From Amoeboaphelidium protococcarum X5 (Eukaryota; Fungi; Aphelidiomycota), in the NCBI GenBank assembly GCA_023515725.1, contig JALDTO010000154.1, forward strand, positions 310,001 to 374,000: a DNA stretch of 64,000 nt. Reading direction: 5' to 3'. Shown piece by piece: positions 37,185 to 44,101 of this stretch (its first letter is position 1; each line of letters opens with the position of its first letter). The notes under the pieces are model-generated. The model saw only the letters and a list, made by a program, of their open reading frames with translations. It ran no database searches and had not been told where the DNA came from. The position numbers and the translations under genes were made by a program.

Positions 37185-39094
37185 TCATACTCGCCAAGAA
37201 TGATCCTTGACGCGTTTCTTGTTGTTTTTGTGATGCTTCTTACCACCTGCAGCGATATCCAGCATAGATGTAGTGGATCCAACGGCTGAACTGGCAGCCG
37301 CTACAGAGTCTCCATCACCGACGCCACTCCCACTTCCACCCATTATATATCCACTCTGATGCGGGAAATGATTCAGTCTTGAGAATCCAGGCACTTGCTT
37401 GTACTTGCCCGTGATCTTGACACCCACCGCACCACTATCCTAATCTTGAAAGAAGCTCTTATCAAAAGTCTTTGGAGCATGACGGCGCTCTTTTTAATTT
37501 ACTACAGGTGATGAAGCAGATTCACTATATGTACTATGCTACGCCGTCTTCTTTGACTCAAGTTTAGCCTGTGCCTGTAGATAGACATCATGCAGACGAC
37601 CACCTTCCTGGTACGAGAACTGATTAAACTATTCGGGATCATACTCACACCCAGGTGGAGGATAGACATACAATAATTCTCCATTCACATAAGCTTTCAA
37701 TACAAGTCGGGCAGAGCGAGATTCGTCAGGATTACCTTGTCCAGATCTCATGAATCCTCTAGCCTAGGCAAGTGAGAGCAGCAAATCTTGTCCAGATATT
37801 TTCTTATTCTAACTTTCATCAAGGAACCCATTAGAGCTAGTAACTGATATAGTGATACCGTACAAGTACTCTAGCAGCCACTTTGGAATTCGCGTAACCA
37901 ACATCTCTGAAGGGGATCTGTAATCTCTGAGCTCATCGACATTCAGTACGCCATTGAGTACCATGTCTGCTTTCGTGGCTGCAAACGTCGGAAACACCAG
38001 ACCAGGACAATCACAGAGAGTGATCTGGGGATAAGACGGAATTACACCTTTCAACGTCTAAAAGTGCTTAGTCTTTCCAGGCGTGGCAGACACATTAACT
38101 TTCTTATCCTGAATCAGAGCATTAATCGTGGAACTTTTACCAACATTAGGATACCCACATAATCCCACTACAACTTCCTTCTTGTCTGCTGGTGCAAATT
38201 GCAGCAAAATCTCACAGAGCTCATTGCAGCTGATAACATCACTGATTGACTTTGGCTATTCAACTTTCTGATCATCCACCTGCACATCATCTTGATCGTC
38301 TTCAGTGGCCTGTGAGGCTACATACGCGGAAAAGAAGGCGAATTTGATGCCTTGAGCCACAAAGTATTCAGCCCAAGATTCACGCTGCTACTTGCTCAAA
38401 AGATCTGCTTTATTCACCAGTAAAACATTAACTTTTGAACTATCAACCTCCACAACGTACTTTTCCAAATCCTCACTTCTATAGAATAGCGGATTCCTAG
38501 CATCTAGAATCTGAACAACAATATCACTTCTCTCCACTACTCTCCACAACTAACGCCACACCTCAAGATTCCTTTCATATGGTGTCATCAGCATCTTCTT
38601 CTCTTCCTCCAACACGGCCAGAGACTTTCGCCACTCTAGAAAACTATCACGCTCATTGCGATCGAGTTCATCAGCAGTAGTACTCGAATCCCAGTGTGGA
38701 CGACGTGGCACTTTCAACTGATCTTGATATTGCGTCATTTTCTACTGCACTTCCTTCATCTTGGCATCGCTCATCACCAATGGATTATGAGTGTCATCAG
38801 AGGTGGACACAATGTGCAGATTACGGCGCTCAGCAGTAAATTCAGTGCCAGCCAGTTCAGCATTTCTTAAAAACGCGTCCAGATCATTTTCCTGAGTAAT
38901 TGATTATAATTTCACAGACTTTGGTGTCTTGTCGATATCAGTGGTAAACTACACATCATCATATAAGTTACGGGATATCAATATAAATATATTAGCTGTA
39001 ATCTTACAAGTCTAGTGTCATCATCTCTGGGCCTCTACCCAGCAAATCTACTCTTAATTATAGCTCTACCCAGCTATTTACCGTTTTTGCCCAT
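37185..39094 (-). CDS. LSG1: Large subunit GTPase 1 (circularly permuted)
   Basis: Intron 38949-39007. Motifs: TPYERNLEVWRQLWRVVERSD, NKADLL, GYPNVGKSS, TPGKTKHFQT, DCPGLVFP. Confidence 0.96.
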
Positions 39095-39147
39095 ATTGGC
39101 TTGTAAATTACCACTCTACCTACTTTTAAAAAGAAGAAAAAATTGTA

Positions 39148-39172
39148 AATTTTACCGCGAAGCGGTAAAATT
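39148..39172. repeat. Perfect 11-bp inverted repeat with GAA loop (AATTTTACCGC-GAA-GCGGTAAAATT)
   Basis: Directly visible. It lies between the transposase-like ORF stop and the LSG1 start. Confidence 0.9.
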
Positions 39173-39278
39173 ACCAAGCAGGGGCTCACACCTGTTTAAA
39201 CTTAAGGTCGAGCAGGAGATAAAATTGTAAAATTAGAGCTATCAAAATTAACTATTAGTACATTTGTGTCAAAGGTCA

Positions 39279-42200
39279 TCATTATTGGCGCTTTTGGATC
39301 TGCTTAAAAGCGCGCATATAGCCATTATATAGTGTATCCTTCTTCTTGATATCTTCTTTTGTTGGCTTTCGTTGCAGTTTAGAGCAGAAATCGTTTGAGT
39401 GGCCATCCACAAATACAAACTAACCAGCCGCGTTTTTGCTCTTCTGAACTTCCAGACATGCGGCGCAGACATGGACACTCTTGTCTAAAAACAATTTACC
39501 TAAAGGATCATCAATGTTATATTTACTTCGTGACACCTTCTTCACCAGCGCTTGCTCCGGCTCCGGCAAAATAAACTCATTCAGATCGAATCCATCAGGA
39601 TGTAGAGGCAGCCTTCTAGGAGAATCAAACACAAAGAGAGCTGGAGGATCTGCAATTTGCGTGAAAGCAGGACCGCTGAGAAGCGCAGACATACTACCAT
39701 CATCCACAACATCTATCTCATGCACATGTTGAGAATCCAAAAGCTGCTGTATCAAAAACGCCTACTGATCAAAGCTTTCAGTGTCGTGACCATCAAGACT
39801 GAATTCTGAATCCAATTAACTAGCACCGGAGACAACAACCTCATTATTGCTAGCCTATAATACTTTCGATTCTTCAATTTGCGACAATTAAGCATCTTCT
39901 GATGACTAAAGCGAAGGAACAGGATGCTGGAATACATGAATATTGTCATTCTGAAGATCATAAGAGAGCTTATTCAATTCATCCAAATGCTTCTGCATAA
40001 ATTATTTAGCCTGCGCCTTCTAGTCCAGACGTTTTAAAAACTCCAACATATGACACTGATGCTTGAACCCAAAACTCTCGAGACCAGCGATAGGATCGTC
40101 CATCGATTTCAGACGGAGTTCAATTTCTATATTCCACTTGGCTGTTAGTTCATTGACATTGATCATGTCACCGTTTTAGATCTGCCCCATCACCAATTCA
40201 ATAAAGAGCTCAATTTCTTATTCGCTTTCGATTGATCTCGGCACCACAGCCGATTTTAAAGATTCGGAGTAAATGGGATCTAATACCACACTAACATCTC
40301 CGCTTGTGTCCAACTTTTTAATGAAATTCTGAAGCCACATCAGCTATAGGTCTGGAACCACCTCATCTATTAACTAAGAGCCTTCGACTTCTTCTTCATT
40401 TATAACAGCAAAATTAGATTCTAAACTACTTTCTGGTACATCAAATATATCGGCAAATTGGTCTTCATCCGCAATATCACTGAAATGAACATTCTGTACG
40501 CCACTGAGACAACCAAAGCTTTCGACATCTTTCGATGTCATGGGAGTCCAAAACACTTTATACATAGGCTGAGCATCAAACAAATCCGGATATTGCTGTC
40601 TGATTGAGACAAGAGCTTGCATTAACCCAAAATCATGCATGCCGAAATTCGACATCAACTTAGATTTAGATGCCATTTTGCAATTCCATTGAAAGACCAA
40701 ATCCATCACCACTAAATCAGCTAGCTCTTATGACATTTATTTAGCCTTGATAGAGTTTCTCAAGTAGAAATGGAAGCCTTCTTATTTAGAGCTCCCCCTC
40801 GCACACTTCAACTTCAACAAGGAGGCGGATGCTGTGGACAGTTGACGATACAGATTCACGCCCGGTGGATCAGAAAGGCAGCCATTGAGTAGATGCTTCA
40901 ACTAATTCTGATGAGTTTCTAGAACAGATTTATTTATAAAATTTGGACACATGCCATGAAACTTAGTAACAACTTCATCAACACGAGCGGCGACTTTCTC
41001 AGCTTCAGGAATGATCCGTCTTATCCTACCACTAGCCAAATACTTTCTATACATCCAGTCCAACTACACGGGAGGAATCTACTTGTTACTCAGGTACTTC
41101 TTAACGGCCTCCACATCAGCCTAGCAATTGACAAATGTAGCATCAGACATAAACTGCAAAAATGATTTGTACAAAAAGTGATGTTTACTAACTTTGTAGC
41201 GATCAATAAAATGGAAAGAGTCCAGCAAAACTCGCTAGTGCTTAGCGCCATCAGTTGGCTCAGTGGATACTTCAGCATTACCGGCATTATTTTACACATT
41301 CTCTTTATTTTCACCATTGCTGTCGTTAGTCTCATTCACATTCTCCACTGCTGCAATCCCCAAATCTATTGCAGAAATATCATTTGCAGAAGGATTGCCG
41401 GAATTTGCGATACTTAATCCATGGTTCTAAGCAGCTTAATCAAACTCCACATCTAGCATCAACTAATCCAATCCTTCAGACGCAGAGAGAAGCAAACATT
41501 CATGCTGATAGTACAGAAGGAAAGACGCATACACGTCATCAACGGCGTATTAAATCTAAGCGGAGGACAATGATTGAGAGCTCCAGGGTGAGATGCGGCA
41601 TGCATGTTTAAAACTCATGGTTTTTTATAAGTGCTCTTCACAAAGAGCCTGGAGATTGAGATTCACCGAGCCATATTGATCTTTGTAAATTTGCTCCACA
41701 TCAACAAAGTTGAGAAGCGGCAGTCCAAAATCGCGCAATAATTTCAAACTATCACCTGAAATATTTACACCAGCTTTAATGACTTTAGATTGCATAAATT
41801 CCACCAGACACTGAGGCAACTCAGCAAAGAAAGAGAGTTATACTATAAGAGCGATCTTTCCGTCGCAAATCTGAATGACAGATGTCGGCCGCTCAGGAAT
41901 CCCAGCTTTATGCACTTTGTCCCACTCCATGTCAAAACCCACAAAATTCTAATTCAAAGTTAGCAAGCGACGTTTCAGCTCTTCTTAACACTTAATTAAT
42001 ACCACTTCACCTTCAAACTATAGCGTTGACAGCGGCGCACGATGAGTCTCAGTAAACGGCTTCAACAGAGAAGGAAAGCACTACTAAAGAACTGCACGAT
42101 CGTGACAACAGTTGTCAGTGTAAAATATCTGCGGACCTCCCATGACATATCTCTAACTAATCTTACTCAGTTGCATTTGAATTTCTTTCAAACCTGTAGA

Positions 42201-43457
42201 ATGCACGAAATAGAAACCACAAACGAGTCCAAATTCATTCATTACAGAATAGCAGCCTTTAAACAAGCGATTTTGATTTTTAACAGGCACCTTAGCAATT
42301 TTGAACGTATGATCACCACATAATATCTCGCCCTTAACCGACATTAATGTGTTAGACTTGTCCTGATGTACAGCTGATTGCCGCTCCTTGTATGCCAAAA
42401 TGAGACTAGGCTAAGAAGGAACCTGGCCACCGTATCCAGCACAATTAGAGTAACTGCCAAAATCTTAAACTTTCTTATTGTTACAAAACATAAATTTGGC
42501 GCCATATTTAAGCTACTAGATGGAATAAGTCTCAAAGCTAATTCTTTGCATTGAGTATACAGAATTATTAATTTCCTAATACAAATGTTAAAAATCTTAG
42601 AATGACTGCGAGTGGATGATTTAGCGGCAAAGCATCAGTAACAATGTATTGTCAATAGCCACCTTTGGATATACGACACACGGCAATTAGTTTTATACGA
42701 ATAATGGCAGCTTCTTAACAACATCCCGATCGTATCCACAGAACTACTTCGAGCAGGCCTTGCAGCGATAGCGCAAACACACTATAGAATACTCGCGACC
42801 AATTGCTGATACGGTTCTCGGTCCACATTTGTTCCACCCGATTTAAACCACACTACCTTCTCCAGCGTTACAAGATTCATTTGGACATTACAGATGGCGA
42901 ACATGTTCCCAAAAGAACAACTCAGGAATCCAAAAGAAACACCTAACACGGTGCCAATCCTATGCATCAATACTTTTAGAGAGCAAAGGATTCGGTGGAT
43001 CCACAAAGATATTCTCCCAGTTTGGAGTCATAGCAGGACGACAATCACATGGAGTAGGATTCTTCAACTGAGTGTTACAAGATTTTCCTCTGCCCTTCTT
43101 ACTCAGGTCACCCTTTTAGAATCTATGTATATCATCCACATGCTTTCTCAACCAGCTGTACTTATCATCCTTCAGCCATGATAGATGGCCTTTCTCCTCC
43201 TCATCTTCCTAGATAACTGTACCCTACACATTTTGAGACGAACTCTAAGTTACAATTCCAGTCGTGCTGTCTTGATTCATAGAGATAGAATCAGTGAGAT
43301 CCACAATTTGACTTCGGACATTCTACTACAGGCGGACAACATTCTCCGTTCCTTGAATTTAAACCCCAAAGCTCAATTTCTATTGTGCTACACTATCGCT
43401 GTTAGATGACTTCTATAAAGAACTTCCACCGAAGTTGAGCTTGGTAGAATCTTTCAT
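39279..43457 (-). mobile_element. Intact 1392-aa DDE transposase-like protein (DUF6729-like N-terminus, MULE/hAT-like D-D-DxxH-E) with inserted DEDDy 3'-5' exonuclease
   Basis: One frame from ATG 43457 to TGA 39279. Motifs in order: FFWIPE..CP..C..GW..GPRTV..RYRCKAC; CGDHTFK (42312); YTDNCC (42114); exonuclease VGFDMEWD (41931), GVNISGD, QYAVDD (41535); RVLLDSFH (41220); GCLSDP; CARGSSKQEGFH (40779); C-terminal CxxC..H..C. Confidence 0.78.
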
Positions 43458-43890
43458 TTAGCACTACAAAGATTGGTGATTGTTAAGTATAGAACACTCT
43501 AAAACGACTTACAATCTTTCGATGATTGTATTAATTCTAATACGAATATCTTTTGTTGCAATGTGGGCAAGTCCAGCTATCGGACTTGCGCACAGGACCA
43601 GGAGTAATCTTCTACTTCTTCAGTTTCATGCGGAGACCACCAAACTCTCTCAAATGATTAGTTAATGCAGTGAATCGAGCTACACACGCATACTTTTTCA
43701 TCAAAAGCAATTATTAAAGAAAAGATAGAATTACTTCTTGATAAGTTAGATTTATTCTACAACAGTGGTTTACGTATTCTAACCACTAACTTTTAATGCA
43801 AAGTAGAATAGTTGCGACTCGTGGCTATTTGTTTCAGCGACTTGTCTCCGACACGATGATTTCTTTCGACGGCTCCGACATGAGCCCCCT

Positions 43891-43929
43891 GACTCCGACT
43901 CCGACTCCGACTCCGACTCTGACTCCGAC
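43891..43929 (+). repeat. (GACTCC)n hexamer tandem repeat, probably a transposon subterminal repeat
   Basis: GACTCC x4, GACTCT, GACTCCGAC. Further TCCGAC/GCGAC copies occur at 43814-43880. Confidence 0.8.
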
Positions 43930-44101
43930 ATTTTCTTTTGAGTAGATCTAACCTATACATCCCCATATTTCTCTCTCACTGTGATTTTAACGTTTTCAAT
44001 TAAGAGAAAAATGAGATCGGCTTTTACGGAAATTAACGGCAAACTGCCTGATATCAGAAAAGCTATATAATACAAAACAATCATTATCTAACTGATGTTA
44101 A

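Follow-up and report, generated by a model that had tools for sequence, protein, structure and literature searches.

A probable Dada-type transposon with a WRN-type exonuclease nested in its transposase in the aphelid Amoeboaphelidium protococcarum

What is encoded by a reading frame of 1392 codons that is invisible in the standard genetic code and joins transposase-like motifs to a 3'-5' exonuclease? The question is raised by a 64,000-nucleotide stretch of DNA from Amoeboaphelidium protococcarum (contig JALDTO010000154.1, positions 310,001 to 374,000 of the forward strand), which we call the window and whose numbering is used throughout. A first-pass annotation, made from the letters of this DNA alone, had described the frame as a DDE transposase-like protein with an exonuclease in its catalytic core, belonging either to a potentially active DNA transposon or to a domesticated nuclease. 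We find that the frame is part of a 4866-bp element at 39098-43963 on the minus strand, which we read as an autonomous cut-and-paste transposon of the Dada superfamily carrying a nested WRN-type exonuclease. We put the probability of this reading at roughly 0.87.

Translation of the reverse complement of 39279-43457 gave 4179 nt, corresponding to 1392 codons and a stop. This main open reading frame (ORF) contains 59 stops in the standard or bacterial code and only the terminal TGA once TAA and TAG are read as sense, just as the first-pass annotation had claimed; with this code, no open frame in the window is longer. UAR encodes glutamine in A. protococcarum (PMC5304391). The ORF has 58 in-frame TAA and TAG codons (25 and 33, respectively) compared with 52 CAA and CAG codons (26 of each), and its codon 1000 carries a CAA>TAA difference between strains. 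The code assignment is based on these ORF statistics, the documented reassignment and the strain difference; a tally of homologue residues at the TAA/TAG columns of the window was uninformative at such divergence. Paralogous loci translated in code 6 match two A. protococcarum proteins in NCBI, KAI3629663.1 and KAI3630079.1, at 99-100%.

Every motif named in the first-pass annotation was recovered where it had been placed. The protein is ordered as DUF6729 with a CCCC finger, D1, D2, a WRN-like DEDDy exonuclease, DxxH, E and a CCHC finger. The N-terminal zinc finger (Cx4C-x35-Cx2C; C191, C196, C232 and C235) lies at 42753-42887 on the minus strand, as do all features of the protein given below. 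D1 is CGDHTFK (amino acids [aa] 380-386; 42300-42320) with catalytic D382, and D2 is YTDNCC (aa 446-451; 42105-42122) with catalytic D448. The exonuclease motifs GFDMEW (aa 507-512), ISGDS (aa 566-570) and YAVDD (aa 637-641) follow, and then the DxxH motif LLDSFH (aa 744-749; 41211-41228) with D746 and H749. The E motif RGSSKQEGFH (aa 887-896; 40770-40799) contains catalytic E893 next to Q892, which is itself a reassigned stop codon. A CxxC...H...C finger at aa 1331-1358 (C1331, C1334, H1353 and C1358; 39384-39467) completes the protein. Across 10 paralogues from the same genome and 59 distant homologues, the residues of D1, D2, DxxH and E vary little or not at all. Specifically, D382 is kept in 30 of 31 aligned homologues and in every paralogue that covers the motif, D448 in 43 of 44, and the D and H of DxxH in 59 of 59. 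In the E motif, the glutamate is kept in all 60 and the arginine and histidine each in 59 of 60.

Owing to the 58 reassigned stops, domains were sought with a genome profile search that reads through stop codons. The 3'-5' exonuclease family PF01612 matched 41511-41996 with 56.4 bits (E 4.1e-14; cut-off 23.6 bits), which corresponds to aa 488-649 and falls between D448 and D746. PF20499 (DUF6729) matched 42624-43007 with 40 bits (E 3.2e-9; cut-off 27 bits) and forms the N-terminal domain. When ten stop-free pieces of the ORF were compared with Pfam, only a weak PF01612 match was obtained; the transposase part went unmatched, with no MULE, hAT or KDZ model among the hits. The best PDB match of a 70-aa stop-free piece of the exonuclease was human WRN exonuclease (E 2.2e-6), with closely similar ExoII blocks. 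A profile of the family matched WRN (E 2e-50), EXD2 (E 9e-37) and Mut-7 (E 3e-22) among PDB sequences, and no transposase. The five catalytic residues of WRN exonuclease, EXD2 and Mut-7/Nibbler, all DEDDy enzymes of PF01612, are present in the window domain as D509, E511, D569, Y637 and D641, and these align with residues of the homologue P0022. In contrast to those enzymes, the window domain sits inside a transposase core; that of WRN forms the N terminus of a RecQ helicase, and the others stand alone.

Exonuclease-free paralogues in the same genome define the borders of the inserted stretch. Their matches (a high-copy family and the loci C206, C162c and C136b) stop at about aa 464-481 and resume at aa 738-741. 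Because these paralogues align on both sides and are missing just that stretch, we interpret aa 465-740 (41238-42065), which comprise the exonuclease and an acidic, asparagine-rich linker, as a nested insertion.

Fold predictions were made on homologues of the window protein. P0022 (1020 aa) is 32% identical to it over aa 100-1029 (E 1e-151), and its full-length model, folded with 59 homologues, had a predicted local distance difference test score (pLDDT) of 82.5 and a predicted template modeling score (pTM) of 0.74. The inserted domain of this model superimposes on WRN exonuclease with a template modeling score of 0.82-0.86 and a root-mean-square deviation of 2.0-2.1 Å at 34-35% identity. Foldseek searches with the whole model were dominated by the exonuclease, and so P0130:150-510, the core of a homologue from Paraphelidium tribonemae that lacks the exonuclease (37% identical to the window protein; pLDDT 90.9, pTM 0.86), was folded separately. 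Its best Foldseek matches were the ISCth4 (IS256) transposase, Hermes, retroviral integrases and the P element transposase. VIA-align gave Z 13.6 over 243 residues for ISCth4, about 10.5 for integrase cores and 10.3 over 241 residues for Hermes, and all of the top 50 rows were DDE enzymes. ISCth4 (PDB 6XG8/6XGX) and Hermes (PDB 4D1Q/6DWZ) share with the homologue core an RNase H-like DDE fold and a helical insertion between beta5 and the E helix. They differ from it in sequence (7-10% identity, no sequence-level match) and have no nuclease nested in the core, whereas Dada has DUF6729 and the CCHC finger.

When sites were mapped onto the models by alignment, D382 fell on beta1, D448 just past beta4, D746 and H749 just past beta5, and E893 on the closing helix, with an all-alpha domain between DxxH and E. 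From these fold matches on homologues, we infer that the D, D and E residues probably converge in an RNase H-like active site. The models also indicate that the exonuclease is an extra insertion between the post-beta4 helix and beta5, and that the canonical insertion domain is not replaced. This corrects the first-pass annotation, which had put the exonuclease at the insertion-domain position: it lies upstream of DxxH, whereas the all-alpha domain of hAT, MULE and IS256-type transposases lies between DxxH and E. The expectation of an RNase H DDE fold interrupted by a DnaQ fold was borne out on the homologue models, from which the fold of the window's own protein is taken.

These features point to a known superfamily. 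Kojima and Jurka described Dada in 2013 as transposases with a DDE triad and DxxH, distantly like those of MuDR, hAT, P, Kolobok and IS256 (PMC3706591). Dada elements encode about 1400 aa with an N-terminal CCCC and a C-terminal CCHC finger, produce target-site duplications (TSDs) of 6-7 bp, lack terminal inverted repeats, with short sub-terminal ones at most, and target U6, U1 or tRNA genes (PMC3706591). They have been reported in four fungal phyla (PMC5751038), and the Dada elements of Laccaria and Ectocarpus carry a DEDDy exonuclease between D2 and DxxH (PMC3706591). The window element has the DDE and DxxH residues (D382, D448, D746/H749 and E893), both fingers, no terminal inverted repeats and, as in the exonuclease-bearing subgroup, an exonuclease between D2 and DxxH. 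An RNase H-like fold resembling those of IS256, hAT and P element transposases was seen on its homologues. The N-terminal finger is spaced Cx4C-x35-Cx2C compared with Cx4C-x34-Cx2C in Dada-U6_DR (C389/C394/C429/C432), D1 and D2 are 66 aa apart compared with 68 aa, and D2 and E, with the insert left out, are 169 aa apart compared with 176 aa.

The closest relatives among published elements appear to be Dada-1_LB and Dada-2_LB of Laccaria bicolor and Dada-1_ES of Ectocarpus siliculosus. Their blocks DHxxK, TDN, LxDxxH, SDPPG..LY and RCxRGTNxxEGxH, together with the exonuclease blocks, are given in Dataset S1 and Figure S1 of PMC3706591. Dataset S1 contains DHTFK, DNCC, GCLSD and RG(T/S)(N/S)xxE, and Dada-1_LB and Dada-2_LB resemble the window protein and the consensus of its family block after block. 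All three share the domain order and the signature blocks of the window protein, including RxxRG(T/S)(N/S)xxEGxH. They differ in that PMC3706591 gives them no definable termini, TSDs or targets, whereas for the window element ends and TSDs are defined, and an empty site and a transcript are known; it also has an aphelid host, UAR read as glutamine, an intron-free main ORF and insertions in ordinary intergenic DNA. The Dada-U6, Dada-U1 and Dada-tRNA families of fish, Daphnia, oyster and Capitella (PMC3706591, PMC8869645) resemble it in their DDE and DxxH proteins of about 1400 aa, their finger and D1-D2 spacings, their lack of terminal inverted repeats and, as far as two sites show, their short TSDs. 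In contrast, those families have no exonuclease, integrate at set positions within U6, U1, tRNA or 5S genes and make TSDs of 6-7 bp, whereas the window element has an exonuclease, 6-8 bp TSDs and no tRNA or Rfam family at or near its sites. KolobokP, which combines a DDD/E transposase with a His-Me finger endonuclease, is a eukaryotic DDE transposon with a second nuclease (PMC9587614); its nuclease type and superfamily are different, and we cite it only as an analogy.

It is unlikely, in our judgment, that the element instead belongs to another superfamily with a C/DxxH motif (MULE/MuDR-like, hAT-like, or KDZ-like with a cysteine-rich N-terminal domain) and acquired its exonuclease independently of Dada. 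Such an origin would fit the structural neighbors, which are IS256, hAT and integrases while no Dada structure has been solved, and it would fit the missing small-RNA targeting and an 8-bp TSD, which is compatible with hAT or MULE. One homologue also gave a match to a ZSWIM1-3 RNaseH-like model, which is MULE-derived, at 22.4 bits (below the 27.2-bit cut-off). However, neither the window pieces nor eight full-length homologues matched the MULE, hAT or KDZ models of Pfam. The motif strings, the finger and D1-D2 spacings and the position of the exonuclease are close to those of published Dada elements, including Dada-1_LB and Dada-2_LB, and real terminal inverted repeats are lacking, as in Dada. 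The first-pass description of a poorly characterized transposon with its own nuclease thus stands as far as the transposon is concerned, but the kind already had a name, Dada, and its nested exonuclease was published in 2013. The design has been known since then; what is new is the host lineage and its code, an exonuclease-bearing member with defined ends and TSDs, evidence that it was active recently, and a lack of small-RNA targeting.

The ends of the element were defined by the block that two loci have in common. The assembly contains two copies of the ORF, one at C154 (the window) and one at C155:887110-891975, as a check of copy number confirmed. Over 4866 bp the copies are 99.98% identical with one mismatch (window 40626), and their flanks are unrelated. 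The window copy is bracketed by CATATT at 39092-39097 on the left and 43964-43969 on the right, or by the 8-bp CCCATATT if the terminal CC of the element is counted; the C155 copy has GAAAAGTG (8 bp) on both sides. TSD length is therefore 6 bp (8 with the terminal CC) at the window locus and 8 bp at C155, from two sites only, compared with the 6-7 bp reported for Dada. Contig C162 carries both window flanks at 92-94% identity, directly joined at a single CCCATATT (about 540249-540256), and thus represents an empty site. The two insertion sites have different sequences and lie in ordinary intergenic DNA. A repeat search found no convincing terminal inverted repeats, and inverted 8-mers between the ends were not above shuffles; the ends have in common only GGnnTGTAnA and TCTAC, at equal distances.

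Other samples place the same ends next to other DNA. Run X5, a second sample under the same species label, contains a 5077-nt contig with the whole element, 17 differences and other flanking letters. In a sediment metagenome contig, the element begins at 39098 behind a different flank. Two further run X5 contigs join 39097 directly to 43970/43972. Being about 10% different from the right flank, as C162 is, they may represent a second copy of the locus in X5 rather than the window site emptied. At this LSG1-EME1 locus, where the first-pass annotation had suggested comparing presence or absence between strains, empty-type contigs do occur in run X5, but they may derive from that second locus copy. 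Segmental duplication as the origin of the two copies was rejected on the TSDs, the empty site and the strain evidence.

Three further sets of matches were evaluated as copies or remnants. An apparent third copy (C231 and C252) was rejected, as the outer limits of these contigs coincide with those of the element and the two meet at the single-nucleotide difference at 40626, which marks them as repeat unitigs. C57:15321-16196 was rejected as an intact copy; it is a frameshifted relic in which aa 799-934 are matched at 74-89% identity in three frames. Relics of the 5' end of the element (217 bp, about 90% identical, same terminus) are present at C209:1852-2058 and C107:11134-11340, which sit in a pair of near-identical loci.

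The gene also appears to be transcribed and spliced. A 4479-nt contig (contig 26) from run X9 spans 39242-43463 and skips 43464-43512 and 43680-43734, and both skips begin with GT and end with AG on the minus strand. These intron-sized GT..AG skips suggest that X9 is a transcript assembly. The first is an intron of 49 nt (GTAAGT...TAG) just upstream of the ATG assumed earlier, where the contig joins 43463 to 43513; the second is an intron of 55 nt (GTAATT...TAG) in the 5' leader, with 43679 joined to 43735. The exon between them (43513-43679) contains an in-frame ATG at 43629-43627, and the frame stays open across the splice, as seen in a coding model obtained by local translation of the joined exons. 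The 41 added codons encode CPHC-x12-H-x3-C, a C2HC finger; the paralogue C162b has a finger 65% identical to it at its N terminus, and one also occurs in the high-copy family. Because the spliced contig contains this exon and the finger is conserved in paralogues, translation probably starts at 43629, 41 codons further upstream, and the coding sequence probably comprises about 1433 codons with one intron. The X9 contig contains one more skip, of 59 nt (38949-39007, GT..AG); the neighboring minus-strand ORF (37185-38774) starts about 175-235 nt downstream of it, and the skip is probably an intron-like gap in the 5' leader of that neighbor.

The first-pass annotation had called for a measure of selection on the ORF. 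Of 13 differences between strains, 8 are synonymous and 5 non-synonymous (binomial p 0.006 against an expectation of 25% synonymous). All 13, scored against run X5, lie in codons 902-1292 (39582-40752) and none in the first 900 codons. This clustering suggests that the 3' part is mosaic or gene-converted.

We regard the element as an active transposon because it forms a two-locus unit at 99.98% identity with TSDs, and has an empty site, a strain-variable insertion and a spliced transcript; the potential activity proposed in the first-pass annotation is borne out by the same evidence. Very improbable is a reading in which the element only looks intact and is now immobile, its copies and strain differences being left by past activity, recombination or gene conversion. 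The assembly has only two full copies, and the confinement of the strain differences to codons 902-1292 hints at recombination or conversion. Against this, the copies are nearly identical, neither the ORF nor any catalytic residue is damaged, the gene is transcribed and the insertion sites vary between strains; moreover, an exonuclease-free sister family of at least 17 near-identical copies argues for recent Dada-type transposition in this genome. Least probable of all is domestication, in which a nuclease derived from a transposase would be fixed and immobile as a host gene between LSG1-like and EME1-like genes. The intact, transcribed and spliced ORF, the synonymous skew and the precedent of a domesticated Dada in cyprinid fish (PMC8869645) could be cited for it, but it is contradicted by the empty locus on C162 and the empty-type contigs of run X5, the near-identical copy that sits, with a TSD of its own, at an unrelated locus, the same ends beside other flanks in another strain and a metagenome, and catalytic residues that are all intact, unlike those of dDada (PMC8869645). 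The first-pass annotation had named a single syntenic copy as the sign of domestication, and the copies instead lie at unrelated loci. Together, these results support 39098-43963 being a transposon and not a domesticated gene.

Several points weigh against the identification of this locus as an active, exonuclease-bearing Dada transposon. Likeness to the published Dada proteins was judged by eye from a supplementary alignment, and the fold evidence comes from homologues that are 32-37% identical to the window protein. The run type of X9 is not on record as RNA, so that its nature as complementary DNA is deduced from the contig itself, and the known insertion sites number only two or three. The role given below to the exonuclease is a published proposal. 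Finally, insertion into small-RNA genes, the hallmark of the characterized Dada families, was not found in the window or at the two sites examined. Small-RNA targeting is a trait of the animal and Perkinsus families and was not the basis on which the Laccaria and Ectocarpus elements were assigned to Dada (PMC3706591).

The window contains no tRNA and no Rfam family, and a weak snoRNA match in the flank is at chance level (E 0.22). The neighbors of the element are two minus-strand ORFs; it lies 324 bp upstream of the start of one and 139 bp downstream of the stop of the other. Two repeats mark its non-coding ends. At the 3' end, a sub-terminal hairpin with 16-nt arms and a 3-nt loop occupies 39143-39177, and its loop (39159-39161) reads GAA here and TTC, the reverse complement, in the other strain, which fits a small inversion of the hairpin tip. 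At the 5' end, a length-variable (GACTCC)n hexamer array occupies 43889-43932; it is 12 nt shorter in the other strain and shorter too in the C209 and C107 relics.

The element belongs to a larger population in this genome. DUF6729 matches occur in at least 30 places, and paralogues were grouped by local code-6 translation and BLAST, with several regions partial and the far ends of the high-copy family outside the coverage. Exonuclease-bearing paralogues, at 25-37% identity, are C162b, two C264 loci, C146, two C179 pairs, C233 and C136; the exonuclease-free ones are C206, C162c, C136b and the family of at least 17 near-identical copies. The motifs DH(S/T)(F/Y)K, DxCC, LDx(F/W/Y)H and RG(S/T)SxxEGxH show no variation in any paralogue whose frame covers them, and the exonuclease blocks are kept in nearly all exonuclease-bearing ones. 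The closest intact paralogue, C162:525504-528959, is exonuclease-bearing and 37% identical; only about 12 kb of C162 separate it from the empty site, and it has no counterpart in the window. Members of the high-copy family (for example C154:403866-407432, outside the window) are 99.8-100% identical with an ORF of at least 919 codons and share the terminus ...GGTACCC. No two of the ten flanks examined at one end of this family agree, and one resembles a tRNA. Across the A. protococcarum genome, at least about a dozen loci of this general kind are filed as hypothetical proteins or are invisible in the standard code.

Beyond this genome, a profile of the E region, run against 1.84 billion proteins, matched 2019 representative clusters at E<=1e-3. 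PF01612 was present in all eight long homologues scanned and DUF6729 in seven of the eight, three of these below the Pfam cut-off. Named sources were aphelids (A. protococcarum and P. tribonemae), chytrids and one mucoromycete. Searches of the literature for DUF6729 and for aphelid transposable elements found none.

Based on these features, a mechanism can be proposed. A single gene, with two short 5' introns and one long exon, probably encodes a transposase of about 1430 aa in the UAR = Gln code. Its parts are arranged as a C2HC finger, DUF6729 with the CCCC finger, an RNase H-like DDE core with an all-alpha insertion domain, and the CCHC finger, and the WRN-type DEDDy 3'-5' exonuclease occupies the loop between the post-beta4 helix and beta5. 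The DDE core would cleave the element ends and carry out strand transfer, with a staggered target cut of 6-8 bp, and DUF6729 and the fingers may bind the element ends or the target. The exonuclease could trim 3' ends or flaps that excision or integration produces, as Kojima and Jurka proposed (PMC3706591), or that arise during repair. We offer as a tentative and rather doubtful extension that exonuclease-bearing Dada elements form a mechanistically distinct branch, which lacks small-RNA targeting and in which the exonuclease step is obligatory, for example as resection of 3' flanks or flaps, whether at the donor or at the target. If this were true, the obligatory step could explain the variable 6-8 bp TSDs and the missing terminal inverted repeats, and the aphelid copy would be the first exonuclease-bearing Dada with defined ends that is apparently active and stands beside exonuclease-free sisters in one genome.

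To our knowledge, Dada is among the least studied superfamilies of eukaryotic DNA transposons; we know of no Dada transposase that has been studied biochemically or structurally, and none appeared in our PDB searches. At this locus, an exonuclease-bearing element is preserved whole: its ends and TSDs are mapped, an empty site and a transcript model are available, and there are signs that it moved recently. It also indicates that Dada elements need not target small-RNA genes. Sister families with and without the exonuclease in one genome offer a natural comparison for what a 3'-5' exonuclease contributes to DDE transposition.

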